From Paragordius varius (Eukaryota > Animalia > Nematomorpha): a stretch of 64,000 nt of DNA. The position numbers were made by a program, and so were the translations under genes. The number at the start of each line of letters is the position of its first letter. Within the stretch, counting starts at the first letter, position 1. The notes beneath the pieces were generated by a model. It made no database searches. It was not told the DNA's origin and saw only the letters and a program-made list of their open reading frames with translations. Below, piece by piece: positions 36,305 through 46,208 of the stretch. Location of the stretch: the NCBI GenBank assembly GCA_964247055.1, contig OZ176054.1, positions 4,216,001 through 4,280,000 on the forward strand, read 5' to 3'.

Positions 36305-39300
36305 TCATCATTGTTACATAAAACACATTTTTGTGATGGGCAGCCATCCCGAAGTCTCTAAGCCTACTAATTTACAAAGTTTTTTTTAATAATTAACAAT
36401 AGTTTGGGGATGGGCTTTTTTATTTGTTACCATTATATGTCTTTGTTCAATGGTCGGTGCAATTTTTATATCTACTATGAAGAAAAAATACTTTAAAAGA
36501 ATGCTTCAATTTATGATAGGTCTTGCTACTGGATCACTTTCTGGCTCTGCAGTATTTCATCTCATTCCACAAGTATATTTTTAATATAATATAGGCGTTT
36601 AATATTTACGAAGACAAATTTTATATAAATAAGGCAGCAGTCATCATTGGTGGAATATATTTGTTCTTCATTACCGAATGGCTTATTAAAATATTTCTAG
36701 AGCACAAAAGAGTATATTTCAATTTATATATTATAGGCAAAATATTTTGAAACCAAAAATTTTAAATTTTTTCATCCATATATAAATACTTTATATAACA
36801 AAAGTAAAACGCATTTAATTTTAGAAAAAAATTTCCTAAATATATTTTCCTGTTGTCATGCCACTTCTCAGCATTCAATTAACAATATACCCGTTAAATC
36901 TGAAAAAATTACCTCAGATATAGAAGATGAAATTAAAACGATTAAAGATTCAAGTATGTTTTTATATAAATAGTTTTGAGTAAAATATTGTTTAAAGTTA
37001 TAATACATGGTGTAATATAATTGTAGAATTATGTGAGACTAAAAAGCTTATTATGCTTTTTTATTTATGATTTTTTACTATCTATAAATAATATCGGCTT
37101 TACAAATTATAATGCTTTTATTTACCTCCTAATTCATCAAATGTTAACAGTAGCAAAACCTTAAAATTATATTATTTATTCGATTAAATATCCGGTCTTA
37201 TCTATATAATATTTAAAATTTACAACATTAATTTGGTTTTCAGAAAAAAAAATATCACATAATTGAAAAAATATTTTATAAAGCATATTACTTACGTTAA
37301 AAATAAAGGTAAATCGCTATTAAACCATTCAATATATGATAAATATTATATAAATAATATAGAAATTATAACCGTTGTAATATATAATTTTTGATCCACT
37401 TTATCTTTTTTTGATTTTATTTATTATATTATTTATTGATCAAAACGAAATAACATAATTAAATTTGTCGATGTCTCAAAACGCTTTAAACGTCATTAAG
37501 GTATGTTTAGTTTACGTTTAAATGAATTAAATGTTAACATATAACTTCTGATGATCTGTAATTTTAAAGCGTGTATCAGTTACTCAATTTATTAACAAGA
37601 TATTTTTCGAAAATGATTTTAATTATCCATTAATTGTTGAATTTTAATCATTTTACAAATATTTAGCTATTAGACCACGATCCATTTCCTTCAACATGCC
37701 CAACCAATATGATAAAAGCCTATCTCCTGGTATGAATTATTAAATGTGGTAAAAAACTACCTATCCTTTTTTAATAATCGAATTCAAATAATTGATGAGA
37801 TTAATATAAATATTGTTGGCTGAGATAGGGAAAACTACAAATAATATTGATATATGTGCTGAGTTTGCCTTTTCAATTTAATATATTAGATACTCAATTG
37901 ATGATTAAGTTATTGTTTTTAATTAACATTATTTAAATATTAAACCTAATGTTCGGGATGATTTTTTGAATGACATTACATTAAGTCGATTCTTATTTAA
38001 ATCATAATTAGAATCGTGCTTTGTTTAAAGATTGGGCACTTATTTATAATTATAGTTGCGAAAATATGTTATATTTCGACTCGTCCAATTATTTTTTTAT
38101 ATAATATTTAAAAACTGTTGTCGGATAACAAGTTTATATAGATCGTTTAGTGGCATTAAATACAAGAATATGCTTTTAAACGTTTTCTATAATTACAATA
38201 CCGATTTTCATAATTTCTTTTCATTGAACCTGAAAAAATCTTCTATAAATGATATTTTCCAGCAAAGTAATAAATTTAGCATAGATTCATAACTTTTAGA
38301 AGTATATTTAAAATAATATCTTTGTGCCATTTATAAGGATTGTAACCGGATCGATTAGCTTTTTTGCAACTTTCGGAACAAAAAAAACGATTTTTATATT
38401 AATGACTAAAGTCATTAGCACTTTTCATACTATTATTAATTTCTTTATTCTTTAAAAATATGTTTATAAACCAATATAGGTGATAATAACAGGCTTGGTT
38501 CATGTTTAGATCCCAATACAATATTACTGCCAAATGAATGTTCCACTGTGATTGACATTTTACCAAACGAAGTACATTTTTGTAAAAATTCACCCTATTT
38601 ATACAATATACTAATTAAATCTATTATCATATAAGCAAATATATTTAACTTAATAAAAAAATACTAAGATCTATGGTAAGATACAGCCTTTTTTATAATG
38701 AAATTGGATATTTGCAATTTATAAAAATGATTATGTTGTCAATATTTTGATTTATGTGAAAACAGTTTTTTACCATATACTAAAATTAAACTATAATTAA
38801 TTACAAATTCAAAAATAAAGCGCTTTAATTTGACATTTATTATTTGCTATTTCAAACATTAGCTAATCAGAACATGTAGCCATGAAAATGGGTTACATGT
38901 TCAAGGACAAAAGACGATCGTTACTTTAGCATACATGATTTTACTGGGAGATGGATTGCATAATTTTATCGATGGTCTTTCGATTGGTGCTGCATTTGCC
39001 AGAAATTTTATTTCAGGTGTCAGCATATCATTAGCTGTGATATTTGAAGAATTTCCTCACGAATTAGGTATAAATATAGTGTTTGTTTGCCCTAAATATT
39101 ATCTAAGATTTTTTGATATTTTTGGATTGACAGACTATATTTCAGGATCAGAATAATTGGAAACCTATAATTAAAATCTCTATTTTGAGATGGACATAAG
39201 CGTACACATAAAAATAATTATAAATTTTTAGAATGCCACATTTTAATTTTTTCACATTTTTTGCCCATAAAATATATATCATTTTCTTAATTTAAAAATA

Positions 39301-39719
39301 TCAAAATTTTACAGATTATATTTTAACTCAATATTAATAACAAACAATTCATGATAGGTGATTTTGCCATACTAATAAATTCCGGAATGTCTATCAAAAA
39401 AGCGATGCTATGTAATTTTATATCCGCCTCAACATGTTACATAGGAATGATTATTGGTATATTTATGGGAGAAGATGTACAAATTAGTTTTTATATATTT
39501 TCATTGGCGGCTGGGATGTTTCTCTACATATCTTTGGTAGATATGGTAAATATTTTTATTTTAAGTTAATACTAGATGCCCGAATTGAACAAGGCCATCG
39601 AAAAGGCCAACAAACTTGGTGATTTGACAAACACTTTAATAGCTTTGTTTTTAGGCCTAATTATTGGGCTTTCCTCCATGTCCTTATTGGCTAAACATGC
39701 CTCAATGTTGGAATTCTAG
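36305..39719 (+). CDS. SLC39A (ZIP8/ZIP14-like) zinc/metal transporter; 5' exons not identified
   Basis: [76 protein letters not shown] (the EEFPHE variant is characteristic of ZIP8/14), [13 protein letters not shown]. Confidence 0.92.
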
Positions 39720-39798: not shown

Positions 39799-41599
39799 TT
39801 ATTTCCAAAATTGGATATTTCCATCAATAGTCGATGTAATTAATAAATTATTTTCTTCATTTGTTAAAATTTTTGTTATATTATTATATGATTTCGATCT
39901 AATAGCATCCCAATTTTGTTCAATTAAAACTTCGATTCCATCGATCAAACGATTATCATACTTTACATTATTTTTAAGCGCATATGATTTTTCAGGGTTT
40001 GTTAGATCCCAATACCTTACGCATGAATCAGTACCTTTCATTTCAAAAAATATAAATACTTGCTATGAGCATATAATTTTCATCGTTTTCATAATAAATT
40101 TGAGCAATGAAATCCTGGGTAGAATCAGTTTCAGTCAATGGTGGATTTGTATTGAACCAAAATGTTTTTTCACGCGAAAGACTGTAAATATCCCATTTCG
40201 ATATCTCATTATAACTTGGTGCACAAAAAATTTTTGCTGGATCTTTGCTTACCCTTACATGCCTTATTGGAGTTTCTAAAATATTTTATATCAATATATA
40301 ATATATGAGAAATCGTAACCGTTTTTGTTTGTCCAAAATATTTTCAAAAAAACGGTTTGGCCAAATGGTTCCGGTCGTTTCGGCATTTATTTTGATGGAA
40401 TTTGTAATTATCCTAATACCACTGTCGTTATTTATAGATACTGTTCTTCCTTTAACTGTGGTAAAATTAGCTTTTGCTGTGTAGAGTGTTTTTAAACTTA
40501 ATTGACATTTTCCCTTTTAATATATAGGTTAATTTTATGAGTTATTTAGAGTATTTTTTTTTTAAGATTTTTCAGCATTATGCAACCAATAGATTTAAAG
40601 TAGTTGTAAAAATCTAATTTTTAATGGTACATATAATAAAATTAGCATGGTAAAAAAAATTAACAAATTTTCAAAATTATTCAAAAGTACTTTATAATTC
40701 AAATGTTTAAAATAGCGAAATTTTCTGAACCGTTTAAAACCAGGGTTTCGCCAAAAAAAGGTATTGGTTTCAAACGGTTTCGATTCCAATGTTGGTATTA
40801 ACCAAACAAATTCAAAAATTAAGAAAAAGGTCGCCATTATTAATTACGAGAGGCGTGAAAATTTATCACTGGCATTAAAAAACGCATATCCCAACCGATA
40901 ACAAAACCATTTGTGGTTCCATTAACCATAAAGTGCATCGATGGGTTGACATCAATACAAATTGAAGATCCAATCTGTTCATGGAAGTTGTTCATGTTAC
41001 ATATATCGACAGTGTTTGAAACATTTAGGCTAAAACACGACTTTCCACTTCGCATATCGAAACCGTTTATTTCATTTTGCTTAAGGTATATCACAGCTAC
41101 AATATAATATTATACTTATGTACCATTGTGTGACATTGGCATAATTTCCATAATCGAATGCTCGCGTCCCATATTATATTTAATTACTTTTTCTTGTGCC
41201 AAATCTACGGAATAAATGCTTTTACAGCCAGCAGCTATTAAATTTGTTTCATTTAGCCAACATAAGGATTGACCATGCGTATCGAGATCTTTTTGCAAGG
41301 TTGGTCTATAAAAACGTGACTTTAAAAACAACAACACCTTTTCATAAATTATAAGAAAAAAGTTGATGAAATGGAAGATGCTATAACTAATATACTTCGT
41401 AATTATAAGTTATATATTCTGATATTTTAGCCAAAAATTTCACTAAATTTTTGTTTTTATCGCTTTTGATATTAATATTTTTATGACAATTGGCAATGAA
41501 GTAATAAAACATTTTAATAATACAGTGTGTGAAATTTGGAATAGAACATTTTGCAAAGGTCATGCTTACTATGACCGTCTCGTTATTATAAAAAATGCA

Positions 41600-41633
<34 letters not shown>

Positions 41634-44600
41634 TATATATTATATTTCTATGATTTGTGAAACCCTTCGTCAATAGTAATCGCAAATAGTTTCGTGCTTG
41701 TTAGCACTCATCAGTACGACACAATTATTTGACTTCCGTCATTTACCTTTACAATATCTTTATCTTATGTTAACAAAATAGAGTGATGCTTAGTTATTAA
41801 ATTGATTTCTATGAAATCCCTAAGTAGCTATACTCTAAATCTATGGTTAAACCTAGGGTTAATTTTCAGTTTATTTTCATATTTTCAGTTTAATTTTTAA
41901 ATTTAATTTAAATTCGTATAACCAACTGCATTTATACCCAAATTGCAAAGTTGGATATATATACGAAATCGATATGTGAAAACCCCAAGTCAAATAGTTT
42001 TGTCGTACTGATGAGTGTTAACAAGCAGGAAACTATTCTACGATTACGATTGACGAAAGTGTTTCACATATCGTGTGTGATTTCTGTTTTTAAATATAAT
42101 TTTCTATTTATTTTCGTTTATCATTACCTTAAAAATAAACAACTATACAAAACATAATCAATGTAGTTTACCTTTACATATAATATATCTTGGTGGAAAA
42201 TAAATTGGTTAAGCTTGAGCATTACCATATTTTTTATTTATATTAAACATATGATATAATTAATATAATGCATGATACAAAAAAATTCTATAATAATAAT
42301 ATTAAATATTATATTGAAATTCGTTTTAAAATATAGAAAAAAGCTAATATTTTTTTGCTTACAAAGCTCAGAAGTCCAAATATTTTCAAAATCTTTTATA
42401 TTTTATCCGCAAAGTGTTACTTATAGGAGAAAATGAGCAAAATATTGGTTTAAAAATCTCAATACAAAATTTCAAATTACTTGTAATTGAAAGCTTAAAA
42501 AATTTTAAATTGTATGACCAAAATTAAAAACTGCAAAATTATATGTTTTTAAAAAATAAAGATATATTTACTTGCTAAAAGTATTTGAAACTAGGGAGTT
42601 GACATCATAAATGTATAGTTTACCATTTTCTTGCAAACACGGCAATAAGGAATGTGCTGAGTGTGACTAATTAAAATATGATAAAAGATATAGGCAACGC
42701 TTATATTTTTTCAAAAATATACATAATATTTTAAATTACATTTTAATTAAAAAAGAACTATATGGCAATTCAACTGCAAGTATTAAACTTCAAGCAACTC
42801 TAAGTATGAAATATTGTTAAAAATAATTTTTTAATATGCGTTTAATTGCGGGATAAAGTTTTCATTTACTTTGAATCTTATAGAATGCTTGGCATGATTT
42901 GGCAAAGTAAAAATTGGATTTCCTTTCGGTCGCCACAAATGGCCCCTATGTTTACCATGAGCTACTTTGTGAATATCGGATGAGTTAGTACATGTCGGTT
43001 GTGAATTAATGGTGAAACAATCTTTTGCATTATACAACCGTAATTTGGATTGCGATAAAACTATACGATTTTGACTATCATCCTGATTTATATGCAAATT
43101 AATAGTATCACTTTGAAAACCATTAATATTGTTGTTTGTTTCAAATAATTCTGTCCATTCCTGATTGTGATTAGGGAGGTCTTTATTCTTGGCACTAAAG
43201 CATAACTAATTACAACATACGCGTTATTCCGTTGGTTACTCGAAATCGGATTTTCATTATGTGCCTTGTTGTTATTTGGTTTGAGAATATTATACGGAAT
43301 GTTATTCTCTTAAAATAATCAGTTACGGTAAATTATATTATTTAATCCTCTAACCTCTAAAAGCAGTTACTAAATGAAAACCTTCAAACATGAAGTCAAA
43401 AAGTTATCAAGTAAAGCACTATTCCGGCCGAAAATGTGTTAGCATATTTTATTAGACGAGTAGACAATTAGATATGTCCATTTATAAAAATGTAACCCAA
43501 TTATTATTATTTGCTTGAATTTTAAAATAAATCAACCAAAATTATCACCAAGTATCTTAATAAATTAAATCAATTAAAATTTAGCAGTCGTTTGATAAAT
43601 TTTTTAAACATTAAGTGAAATCTTAATTCATGAACTGTGGTGTTGCTTTAAAATAATTATGCCAACTGATATAGTACTTATATAAGGGTTTATTAGAAGA
43701 TGAATAAAATATTTGATACCTTGTATTTTTTTATGCTAAAAATTATAAAATGAAAATGGTACTTCAAACGAAACAAATGATGGTGAAAATCCTACAAGTT
43801 ATTAATATATCAATAAACTTTCTAAATAGATCCCATAATATTGATTTATCAAGTATATGTAATCTTTACTATATGTATACAGATACCTTCATAATTTTTT
43901 TCATGCAAAGGAGGTACATTAATTTTGTTTTGCTTGGCAAGAAAAGACTGTAAAAGTAGATAAATAATTAAAATTTCAAGATCCTTTAATTCTTTTAGCG
44001 TGTTTCGAACAATTAATTTGGCTTTTCTATTTCCTTGCGTATTATCAGCTTGTATTACAAACGGTATTAATAACATACAAATTTTTATAGGGAGAGCAAT
44101 GACTGAAAACTAAATTTTTATACAAATAAAAATTCAAACGATATGGTGTATGGCATTCAAAACAGAAAGTTTGCAATCCATTTTTTCGAACCCGTGATAC
44201 AAAAGTGGATAAATTTGGTCTAAAAAACAATGAATAATAAAAAATGTCAACTTTGATGATTATGAAAACTAGTAAGTCCTCCCCATGTGCCTAATATGTA
44301 TTTTGGTAATAATCGGTATATTTCCCAACAATATCGGTCATTTATATCGTTGAAGAAGGATATGCTATGAGAAACCAAAACATTGCTAATCATGTAGCGG
44401 CGAAATACAAATATAAATTTTGATATAACCATGTAAATTACAGCTTTACGGATGAAATTTCGATACTTTTCATACGTTCCTGTACCAATCAGATATTGTA
44501 CAATTATTTTCGAAAACTGATTTTCAATAACTAACATGGTCTATGTGAATTAGCTATATATTAATATACCTCGAAAAAAGCGTAACGATTCAACCGATAA

Positions 44601-46208
44601 TCGAATTCATTAATGTGCTCAAAAAGATAATAAATAATTTCCTGGATATTTTCAGCGGATTGGTTCAAAAATTTGATTATTAGAAAGATGTATGAATAAT
44701 TATCTGTTAAGTTTGCATCTTTGAACGATCGTATCATATTGTATAAAACAAAATCGGTGTAATAATTTGTGTTTTCTATATCTGATTTATCTAGAAGCCA
44801 ATGATATTTTTGCCAACCGGTTAATAATGTAGCATGAATGTGAGAAAGTGTTTTCAAACATTTATATTTCAATTTAAAATCGGGATTCTCCCTTTGGCTA
44901 AAAATATACATTATGTGTGGGACAATATTCTCCATCATTAAATGCTTAATTTCCATAAATTTATGATAATCAGGATCAAACTTAATCCATTTTTGGAGGC
45001 ATTTAAAAACAATATAATAGGAATCAACAAATTTTAGATCAAAAGTATCGATGGTTAAACAATCATCGGTGTTTGGTGTTTTTAGGGGAGCTAGCAAAAA
45101 TGAAATGAGTATTATTTTATGGAGATTCATATTGACATCCATTTCTAACCGTTCCAAATTGTCTGCAATAGAAATAATCTTTTCATCCCAGTTATAATGC
45201 TTAATTACGGAAAAATATTCATTTATGAATATAAATTCAGCAACTTTTGAATCATTTAATATTATTTTAACGACTTGAGTAGCATTAGGTCTGAGATTTT
45301 CATTAAGTGATAACATTTTAGATATTGCATATCTTACCGATAAATTACTTATTTTATACAAAATCTAAATTGTCATAGATAATACCTCGTGAGGAAAAAA
45401 TTTTTTGTTTTTGAATAAAATTAATTGACGGGAATTAAAGGGAAAAAATCCCCCTGAAAATAATTGTAACAAAGTGCAACCAGCAGAAAATATGTCCATC
45501 TTATCCGTAAAAAACAGTCTATTATCTAAAATTGATTAATTTATACTAACCTTTGATATTATAAAATCGTTCTGGGGCTATGTAACATTGATGCCTTTGA
45601 GATGAATCAAAAAAATATGTGAAATCTGAAGGATTGTCTTCTGGTATCAAAACTGGTTTAAATGAAGCAAAATCGGTTAAGAACAAATAATTCCAGGATG
45701 AGAGTAAAATCTGTTTAAATTATTATTAAAAAACATTTTCGCATTTAATATCCCCATGATATATTTGTTTTTCATGCATCAATTGCAAGGCATATAAAAA
45801 TTGATATGCAATCCATATTTTTTCCGTGTCGCATAAAAAAGGTCGGGTATTTATACGATCATACAAATTATATTTAATATATTGTCTATGGATATAGGCT
45901 GCTCTGCTGCTTTTTACGTCAAAATAATTGTAAGGCAAAAAACAATAGATGTGATTTAGTTTTTCCTAAAATATACGTATTATTACTTTTATATATTGTA
46001 TTTGATCTTTATGTATTTTTATTGAGAAATTGTTTGGTACAATAAATATTTTTAGCGTTAAAAACCCTTCTGCATGAGAAACTTTTATAGATTTGAGAAA
46101 TCTTGATTTACCCATCATGGAATTAAATTGAACCGTTTTAATATCTGCTACATATTCATTAATATCGTAAAAATCTATCGGAGCTAATGCTGCCAGTTGA
46201 TTACCCAT
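39799..46208 (-). CDS. PIK3R4: Phosphoinositide 3-kinase regulatory subunit 4 / Vps15 (kinase, HEAT, WD40)
   Basis: MGNQLA myristoylation-type N-terminus, [79 protein letters not shown]. Confidence 0.95.
41669..41734 (-). ncRNA. Minimal type I hammerhead-ribozyme motif (HHR-2), intronic and sense to Vps15
   Basis: Minus strand reads GTCAA...TCGTA CTGATGA GTGCT-AACA-AGCAC GAAA CTATT TGCGA...TTGAC. It has the core CUGAUGA/GAAA, a perfect 5-bp stem II, stem I TCGTA/TGCGA and a distal GTCAA/TTGAC. One nucleotide shorter than HHR-1 at the cleavage site. Confidence 0.7.
41989..42054 (+). ncRNA. Minimal type I hammerhead-ribozyme motif (HHR-1), inverted relative to HHR-2
   Basis: TCGTA(42003-07) CTGATGA(42008-14) GTGTT-AACA-AGCAG GAAA(42029-32) CTATTC TACGA(42039-43), with distal GTCAA/TTGAC and a further perfect 12-bp helix (41970-41981 with 42062-42073). 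There is a G.G mismatch at the base of stem II. Confidence 0.7.

Follow-up and report, generated by a model that had tools for sequence, protein, structure and literature searches.

What are two damaged hammerhead ribozyme (HHR) motifs, one on each strand, doing in an intron of the Vps15 gene of the nematomorph Paragordius varius? The motifs, here called HHR-1 and HHR-2, lie in a 64,000-nucleotide stretch of genome assembly GCA_964247055.1 (contig OZ176054.1, positions 4,216,001 to 4,280,000 of the forward strand). We call this whole stretch the window, and positions without a contig prefix refer to it. An earlier note, made from the letters of the window, had described the motifs as two minimal type I hammerheads with different lesions and had proposed that they probably descend from an active family elsewhere in the genome, possibly a non-coding ribozyme retroelement. 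We find that the locus is very probably one old, decayed insertion of a non-autonomous 445-nt retroelement that has no open reading frame (ORF) and carries a type I hammerhead, in other words an animal retrozyme of the kind without long terminal repeats (non-LTR).

The letters agree with the earlier description of two type I motifs, their stems and their positions. The HHR-1 domain (41989-42054, plus strand) reads, in order, GTCAA, a 9-nt loop, TCGTA, CTGATGA, GTGTT-AACA-AGCAG, GAAA, CTATTC, TACGA, a 6-nt loop and TTGAC, so that GTCAA/TTGAC form the outer and TCGTA/TACGA the proximal part of stem I; the CTGATGA core stands at 42008-14, stem II at 42015-28 and GAAA at 42029-32, and the predicted cleavage site follows C 42038. 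A perfect 12-bp helix (41970-81 with 42062-73) closes the outer end. This helix is real, as the note had reported, but it is not special to HHR-1: it belongs to the long stem I of the whole family, and the extended stem I rod that it closes (41970-42073, plus strand) is a family-wide feature, with a folding energy of -28.7 kcal/mol (z -3.1) in the window and -42.0 kcal/mol in an intact family copy. HHR-2 (41733-41669, minus strand) has the same layout, with CTGATGA at 41714-41708, an intact stem II (GTGCT/AGCAC) and then GAAACTATT-TGCGA; the family cleavage site would map between 41685 and 41684.

A repeat search showed that the two motifs are inverted repeats of each other, with 51 nt at 92% and 17 nt at 94% complementarity. 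When a natural reference unit of the family was compared with the window by blastn, HHR-1 and HHR-2 proved to be the arms of a single head-to-head insertion. The two lesioned motifs of the note therefore stand, but not as independent copies. The left, inverted arm (41652-41735, minus strand) is made up of unit positions 394-445 and then 1-33; the arm is 5'-truncated and stops at a (TA)n tract. The right arm (41735-~42178, plus strand) consists of unit positions 126-445 (41735-42038) followed by 1-~145 (42039-~42178), which comes to 1.04 units and is 88% identical to the reference unit, the 3' end being approximate; the arm is supported by a direct repeat (41742-66 and 42167-91) with a spacing of 425. 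The element probably inserted into the (TA)n microsatellite that abuts the left arm (41598-41651), a tract at which no target-site duplication of the window insertion could be discerned.

The family was characterized in the window's own assembly (110,561,105 b in 44 contigs). Further copies, for which the note had proposed a genome-wide search, were found: a 114-nt stretch of the unit gave 44 scored matches among 291 candidates, and the intact 31-nt core, CTGATGAGTGCTAACAAGCACGAAACTAGTC, had 105 exact genomic copies, compared with 0 for the reversed control. When stem II was relaxed to any sequence, the count rose to 143 copies, all of the same family, again with 0 in the reversed control. Most genomic copies keep an intact ribozyme core, which bears out the proposed origin in a family elsewhere in the genome; its members are dispersed on all large contigs, and the similarity among them reaches well past the ribozyme domain. 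Tandem arrays with a period of 444-445 nt and up to ~2.4 units were also found, for instance at C4:11695768-11697171, although most of the family occurs as scattered partial units. A single natural copy from this array, numbered from the GUC cleavage site, served as the reference unit, which is thus not a consensus. The unit is 445 nt long with 26.5% GC and has no ORF, the longest stop-free run being 61 aa, in line with the suggestion of a non-coding ribozyme retroelement. Because an ORF for reverse transcriptase (RT) and GIY-YIG endonuclease is absent from both the unit and the window, the unit is non-autonomous; the window holds no ORF of a Penelope-like element (PLE), as the note had stated. 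Folded as a circle, the unit reached -88.1 kcal/mol, compared with -57.3 +/- 5.5 kcal/mol for dinucleotide shuffles (z -5.6), and in this circular fold stem I is prolonged into a ~25-bp helix.

The hammerhead motif of the family is complete. The majority line, which covers the 66-nt ribozyme domain and was taken from the copy alignment (35 aligned copies), reads TCGTA-CTGATGA-GTGCT-AACA-AGCAC-GAAA-CTAGTC-TGCGA, a full type I hammerhead: stem II has 5 bp, the A15.1-U16.1 pair is present, the CUAG loop is palindromic and the cleavage triplet is GUC. All positions of the conserved hammerhead core (C3 U4 G5 A6 N7 G8 A9, G12 A13 A14, A15.1-U16.1, H17) are present, as are the three helices, of which helix I is open-ended. 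Over 25 distinct copies, the 16 proposed pairs were 97% paired, compared with 15-43% when the partners were slid. Of helix III only 1 bp is left, and the tetraloop that caps it, CUAG, is palindromic. The designation type I thus holds, whereas "minimal" does not: this is the canonical metazoan form with a 1-bp helix III and CUAG, as in amphibian retrozymes (PMC4209133, PMC7229834). Given the 1-bp helix III with its palindromic loop, the family ribozyme is predicted to cleave efficiently, probably, only as a dimer; in amphibian hammerheads with a like helix III, cleavage is poor in the monomer and good in the dimer (PMC7229834).

Several results weigh against a catalytic hammerhead as the heart of this family. 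No Rfam model reached its gathering score anywhere in the window. In an E-value search of the whole window, the sole match was Hammerhead_HH9 on HHR-2, with 23 bits against a gathering score of 52 and with the core aligned correctly, so the Rfam check that the note had proposed returned a hammerhead, but below threshold. Family copies scored 23-27 bits with HH9, also with the core aligned correctly, and one of them scored 24.5 bits with RF00163 (gathering 34); these scores are sub-threshold because helix III is short. There was no compensatory covariation, with 0 pairs changed on both sides among copies that are 97% alike and therefore give the test no power. The note had named a lack of covariation as grounds for refuting the ribozyme, but this is too strict a demand here, since the family is too young (mean column identity 97%) for covariation to be visible. 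The unit stretch 149-250 is conserved as well as the ribozyme, and the minimum-energy fold of the ribozyme domain is an inactive alternative, favored by ~8 kcal/mol. Finally, the unit sequence was absent from the sequencing runs X6 and X7, which are guessed to be RNA; since all runs were available only as contigs, this counts as evidence neither way. The runs that do contain it (X1-X5) are of unrecorded kind and probably DNA, and the joints listed for X1 stem from a large number of diverged copies in the genome.

Taken at face value, the missing covariation, the lack of a gathering match and the absence of the unit from the presumed RNA runs would suit a chance or fossil motif without catalysis, carried by a repeat that spreads independently of self-cleavage. 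It also speaks for this explanation that PLE insertion in vitro proceeds without hammerhead cleavage (PMC11167929) and that Naiad PLEs thrive without hammerheads (PMC8557442). We nevertheless consider it very improbable, as it would leave unexplained why all conserved core positions and three helices are present, why the loop and the bulge are like those of the Schistosoma and HH9 type I ribozymes, and why a G-U to A-U polymorphism in stem I leaves the pair intact. Moreover, few parts of the unit have diverged as little as the ribozyme domain, in which site differences are 3-4%, compared with 10-14% in unit positions 35-148 and 251-371. This divergence was measured on copies picked by the non-ribozyme part of the unit, an earlier figure of 0.7-2.8% having been biased by the choice of copies. 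Active type I hammerheads in such repeats are, in addition, known from corals, mussels and amphibians (PMC7229834).

If the family is intact, what is the state of the two window copies? Compared with the family majority, HHR-1 has a change of C11.1 to G, giving a G10.1.G11.1 pair at the base of stem II, and a further C-to-T change in stem II, which leaves a U.G wobble; its loop 3 reads CTAT in place of CTAG, and all core bases are kept. HHR-2 has the same G-to-T change in loop 3 and lacks C17, for which a U could stand in as H17. Measured against the majority, the two lesions named in the note, the G.G pair and the 1-nt loss (C17), are thus both correct. What the note missed concerns the small palindromic loop of stem III, which it had named as a trait of such hammerheads in PLE pseudo-LTRs and animal retrozymes: the palindrome is a property of the family, but ACTAGT is gone from both copies in the window. 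The ACUAGU dimer duplex is worth -6.2 kcal/mol in intact copies; for the two copies in the window, the values are only -3.4 and -0.5 kcal/mol. Because both arms have lost the loop-3 palindrome and, in addition, either the stem II pair (HHR-1) or C17 (HHR-2), the window insertion is most likely an old, decayed and inert intronic relic. HHR-2 is in sense orientation and HHR-1 in antisense orientation to the Vps15 pre-mRNA, and nothing suggests that the damaged HHR-2 cuts the Vps15 message.

The question of how such a unit came to be inserted was addressed with a census of 83 arms, chained across 58 distinct loci. The 5' starts of the arms are spread across the whole unit, while most of their 3' ends fall within two clusters on the unit, positions 110-129 with 31 arms and positions 140-159 with 35, which lie ~30 nt apart and together account for 66 of the 83. 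In 21 of the 83 arms the length exceeds one unit. All 32 adjacent arm pairs are head-to-head and none is tail-to-tail, and the 19 solo arms have their 3' ends at the same positions as the paired ones. The target-site duplication that encloses both arms had a median length of 13 bp, compared with 5 bp in shifted controls; a flank match of >=7 bp was observed in 28/32 pairs and 6/32 controls, with lengths of ~7 to 18 bp. Because its flanks share a target-site duplication, a head-to-head pair represents one insertion event. The two 3' ends are not combined evenly, as 18 pairs join a short to a long end, against 3 short-short and 1 long-long (binomial estimate ~0.002).

A layout of this kind calls to mind a DNA transposon resembling a miniature inverted-repeat transposable element (MITE), in which the arms would be terminal inverted repeats for a transposase and the ribozyme a passenger. 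The window copy and 32 other loci do look like inverted repeats around a short spacer, bounded by duplications. The comparison fails because the inverted repeats and the duplication length of MITEs are fixed: here the inner arm ends vary and the outer ones are fixed, the opposite of the pattern that internal deletions between terminal inverted repeats would leave, and the duplications range from ~7 to 18 bp. Nor would such a transposon account for the arms within one insertion, which have unequal lengths and stop at two distinct positions of the unit, for the solo arms with the same 3' ends, or for the arms longer than one unit, which are partial tandems. We regard a MITE-like origin as extremely improbable.

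The same features are familiar from PLEs, whose hallmarks include truncation at the 5' end, copies in partial tandem, a neighboring copy that is inverted and 5'-truncated, and a tail of 30-40 bp at one end only (PMC8557442); in PLE insertion, both DNA strands are cleaved and extended, and reverse transcription begins inside the RNA, at two adjacent sites (PMC11167929). The family displays variable 5' truncation with fixed 3' ends, an inverted adjacent arm, partial tandems and a tail at one end. Judged from the genomic sequences, its insertion architecture is of the PLE type. Target-primed reverse transcription by long interspersed nuclear elements (LINEs) also typically leaves 5' truncation together with duplications of 7-18 bp, and the unit has no detected sequence link to the PLE of this genome, so we also weighed a unit like a short interspersed nuclear element (SINE), mobilized by a LINE and not by a PLE, in which the hammerhead would only trim the transcript. 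This explanation fits poorly because there is no A-rich tail, because the 3' ends fall at two sites and because the pairs are obligately head-to-head. More fully, the arms lack a poly(A) or simple-repeat 3' tail, and their 3' ends lie at two internal sites ~30 nt apart, with 18 mixed versus 4 same-type pairs. Partial tandems are common, as in the features that have been described as PLE-specific (PMC8557442), and the PLE that is resident in this genome has a similar tail and inverted-arm architecture. A LINE-driven origin is therefore improbable in our judgment.

This resident PLE was found by a six-frame GIY-YIG search of the genome, which gave 20 matches, several of them as head-to-head pairs within long frames. 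The loci L041, L042 and L043 are copies of one PLE, 95-99.8% identical, with ORFs of 758, 788 and 485 aa; its arms are arranged head-to-head (L041:5157-7507, plus strand, with L041:3579-5157, minus strand; L042:4149-6856, minus strand; and L043). The ORFs contain RVT_1 (35 bits) together with GIY-YIG as the C-terminal domain by Pfam, and RT proteins homologous to them, ~800 aa long, occur in insects, nematodes and axolotl, where the contigs concerned measure 2.5-3.5 kb; searches of PDB and NCBIfam with the PLE ORF gave no match. The pseudo-LTR (pLTR) of the element is ~190 nt long, one arm bears a ~38-nt tail, and the insertions lie in (TA)n. The PLE ORFs for which the note had proposed a search thus exist as an autonomous element elsewhere in the genome, but none adjoins the insertion in the window.

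The pLTR of the resident PLE carries a candidate minimal hammerhead of its own (L041:7375-7404, plus strand), with a U3-A8 core and an unpaired A preceding a 7-bp stem II. It reads TTGACAA-A-GATTACT-TGT-AGTAATC-GAAAT, and the motif had 212 genomic occurrences at <=2 mismatches, compared with 0 in the reversed control. It had no Rfam match, and its helix I is unclear in the AT-rich flanks; these traits of core and stem II are those of the variant described in 2014 (PMC4209133).

Could this PLE supply the enzyme for the 445-nt unit? It is a possible source. A further point to be set against our reading is that the unit has no sequence likeness above shuffles to the resident PLE, the one PLE family compared, by blastn, nhmmer or local alignment. 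One sequence, ACAATATC, is common to the PLE and the unit near the long 3' ends; it was not significant and was rejected as a link. Since the two have no sequence in common, we infer mobilization in trans only from the shared integration signature. In the mechanism that we propose, tandem copies would give rise to a multimeric or circular unit RNA, which the hammerhead would process. A Penelope-like RT/GIY-YIG protein, acting in trans, would then make a staggered double-strand cut, and, with both DNA ends as primers, the same protein would start reverse transcription at two internal sites that lie downstream of the ribozyme. That the family is currently or recently active and is mobilized by the resident PLE itself, without shared sequence and through recognition of structure, is a tentative proposal, which we think rather unlikely in this specific form. 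What the enzyme recognizes would in that case be the hammerhead with its rod domain, or else an AC-rich region ~115-145 nt downstream of the cleavage site.

If such mobilization is true, the genomic copies are a natural record of a mechanism so far seen only in vitro, for the PLE of Anolis, in which the double-strand cut is staggered, both DNA ends serve as primers, and a multimeric or circular RNA offers two internal start sites for reverse transcription. The window copy itself matters little; it is the family that constitutes a genome-scale data set, with ~80 arms and their target-site duplications. The family ties a repeat with a canonical type I hammerhead to a Penelope-like integration signature, a link that would hold without pLTR homology. 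Xenopus retrozymes resemble PLE pLTRs (Li et al. 2026 preprint); by the pLTR-homology criterion of that work, the unit falls short, with nothing above shuffles against one PLE family.

The 445-nt family is a further member of an already known kind, the retrozymes and Penelope-dependent elements, and it shares features with both. Like the metazoan non-LTR retrozymes (Cervera & de la Pena 2020, PMC7229834), it is an ORF-less, AT-rich repeat within the range of 150-450 bp, with a canonical type I hammerhead, duplications of >4 bp, tandem copies and a predicted unit circle that is strongly self-paired. The axolotl ribozyme HHR_Amex1, which must dimerize, likewise has a 1-bp helix III and a palindromic tetraloop (PMC7229834). 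Unlike those retrozymes, the copies here are mostly dispersed, 5'-truncated and often head-to-head, and the arrays have <=~2.4 units and are not long multimers. With PLE insertions and pLTR hammerheads (PMC4209133, PMC8557442, PMC11167929) the family has in common the 5' truncation, the partial tandems, the adjacent inverted copy and a tail of ~30 nt at one end, as well as AT-rich or (TA)n targets and paired hammerheads on opposite strands, 100-700 bp apart. It differs from PLEs in that the unit has no RT/GIY-YIG ORF, and from the minimal hammerheads of PLE pLTRs, which have a helix II of 7-8 bp and no helix III, in that the unit has a helix III and a 5-bp helix II. The pLTR of the resident PLE is also unlike the unit, having no sequence similarity to it and a different candidate motif with the U3-A8 core. 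Finally, the unit resembles Rfam Hammerhead_HH9 (RF02275) and the type I hammerheads of Schistosoma and newt satellites in its core and in loop 2 (CUAACAAG vs CCAAAAAG), and also in an internal loop of stem I that contains UAC. It is unlike HH9 in that its helix III is cut to 1 bp, and in that HH9 is no repeat but a conserved intronic ribozyme that amniotes carry in single copy.

The host gene lies on the minus strand and, on the strength of its translated exons, is Vps15/PIK3R4. Exons that match PIK3R4 flank the insertion, as the note's placement in a Vps15 intron requires: residues 94-154 of PIK3R4 are matched by a kinase exon at 45726-45938 (minus strand; E 5e-18), and residues 1146-1182 by a WD40 exon at 40840-41094 (minus strand; E 0.007). 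The insertion is intronic because it is positioned between the open frames 41116-41337 (downstream) and 42831-43097 (upstream), both on the minus strand; neither has a match of its own, and each is taken as a Vps15/PIK3R4 exon only by its position between the matched exons. A PDB search with the 266-aa middle exon of Vps15 gave no match.

Short, broken GIY-YIG matches were also observed at C7:7794-7928, C28:8476-8598, C3:14411901-14412020 and C4:14188756-14188875, each covering profile positions 3-43 with one stop. Those on C7, C3 and C4 lie <~10 kb from the contig ends, which suggests a subtelomeric repeat with a fragment of a PLE endonuclease. Contig C7 opens with CCCTAA repeats mixed with CCTAA (C7:1-90, L045:1-90), that is, with a telomere, and past it runs a low-complexity tract of the GTTAAAG type with spurious frames of 600-700 aa on both strands. 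The sole case of the 445-nt family close to GIY-YIG sequence, one unit fragment ~950 nt from the broken subtelomeric fragment on C7, was judged coincidental.

The genome contains a second hammerhead family, seen as 34 RF00163 matches with 27-33 bits (gathering 34). Several of these form head-to-head pairs, for example at C5:3207224-3207267 (minus strand) and C5:3207593-3207636 (plus strand), at C4:786579 (minus strand) and 786995 (plus strand), and at C5:11946728 (minus strand) and 11947169 (plus strand). All RF00163 matches except one, C5:6837634, lie away from the 445-nt family. In the window itself, open frames with ZIP-type zinc transporter motifs, recognized by eye, occur at 38935-39569 (plus strand), just past the 3' end of Vps15 and on the opposite strand.

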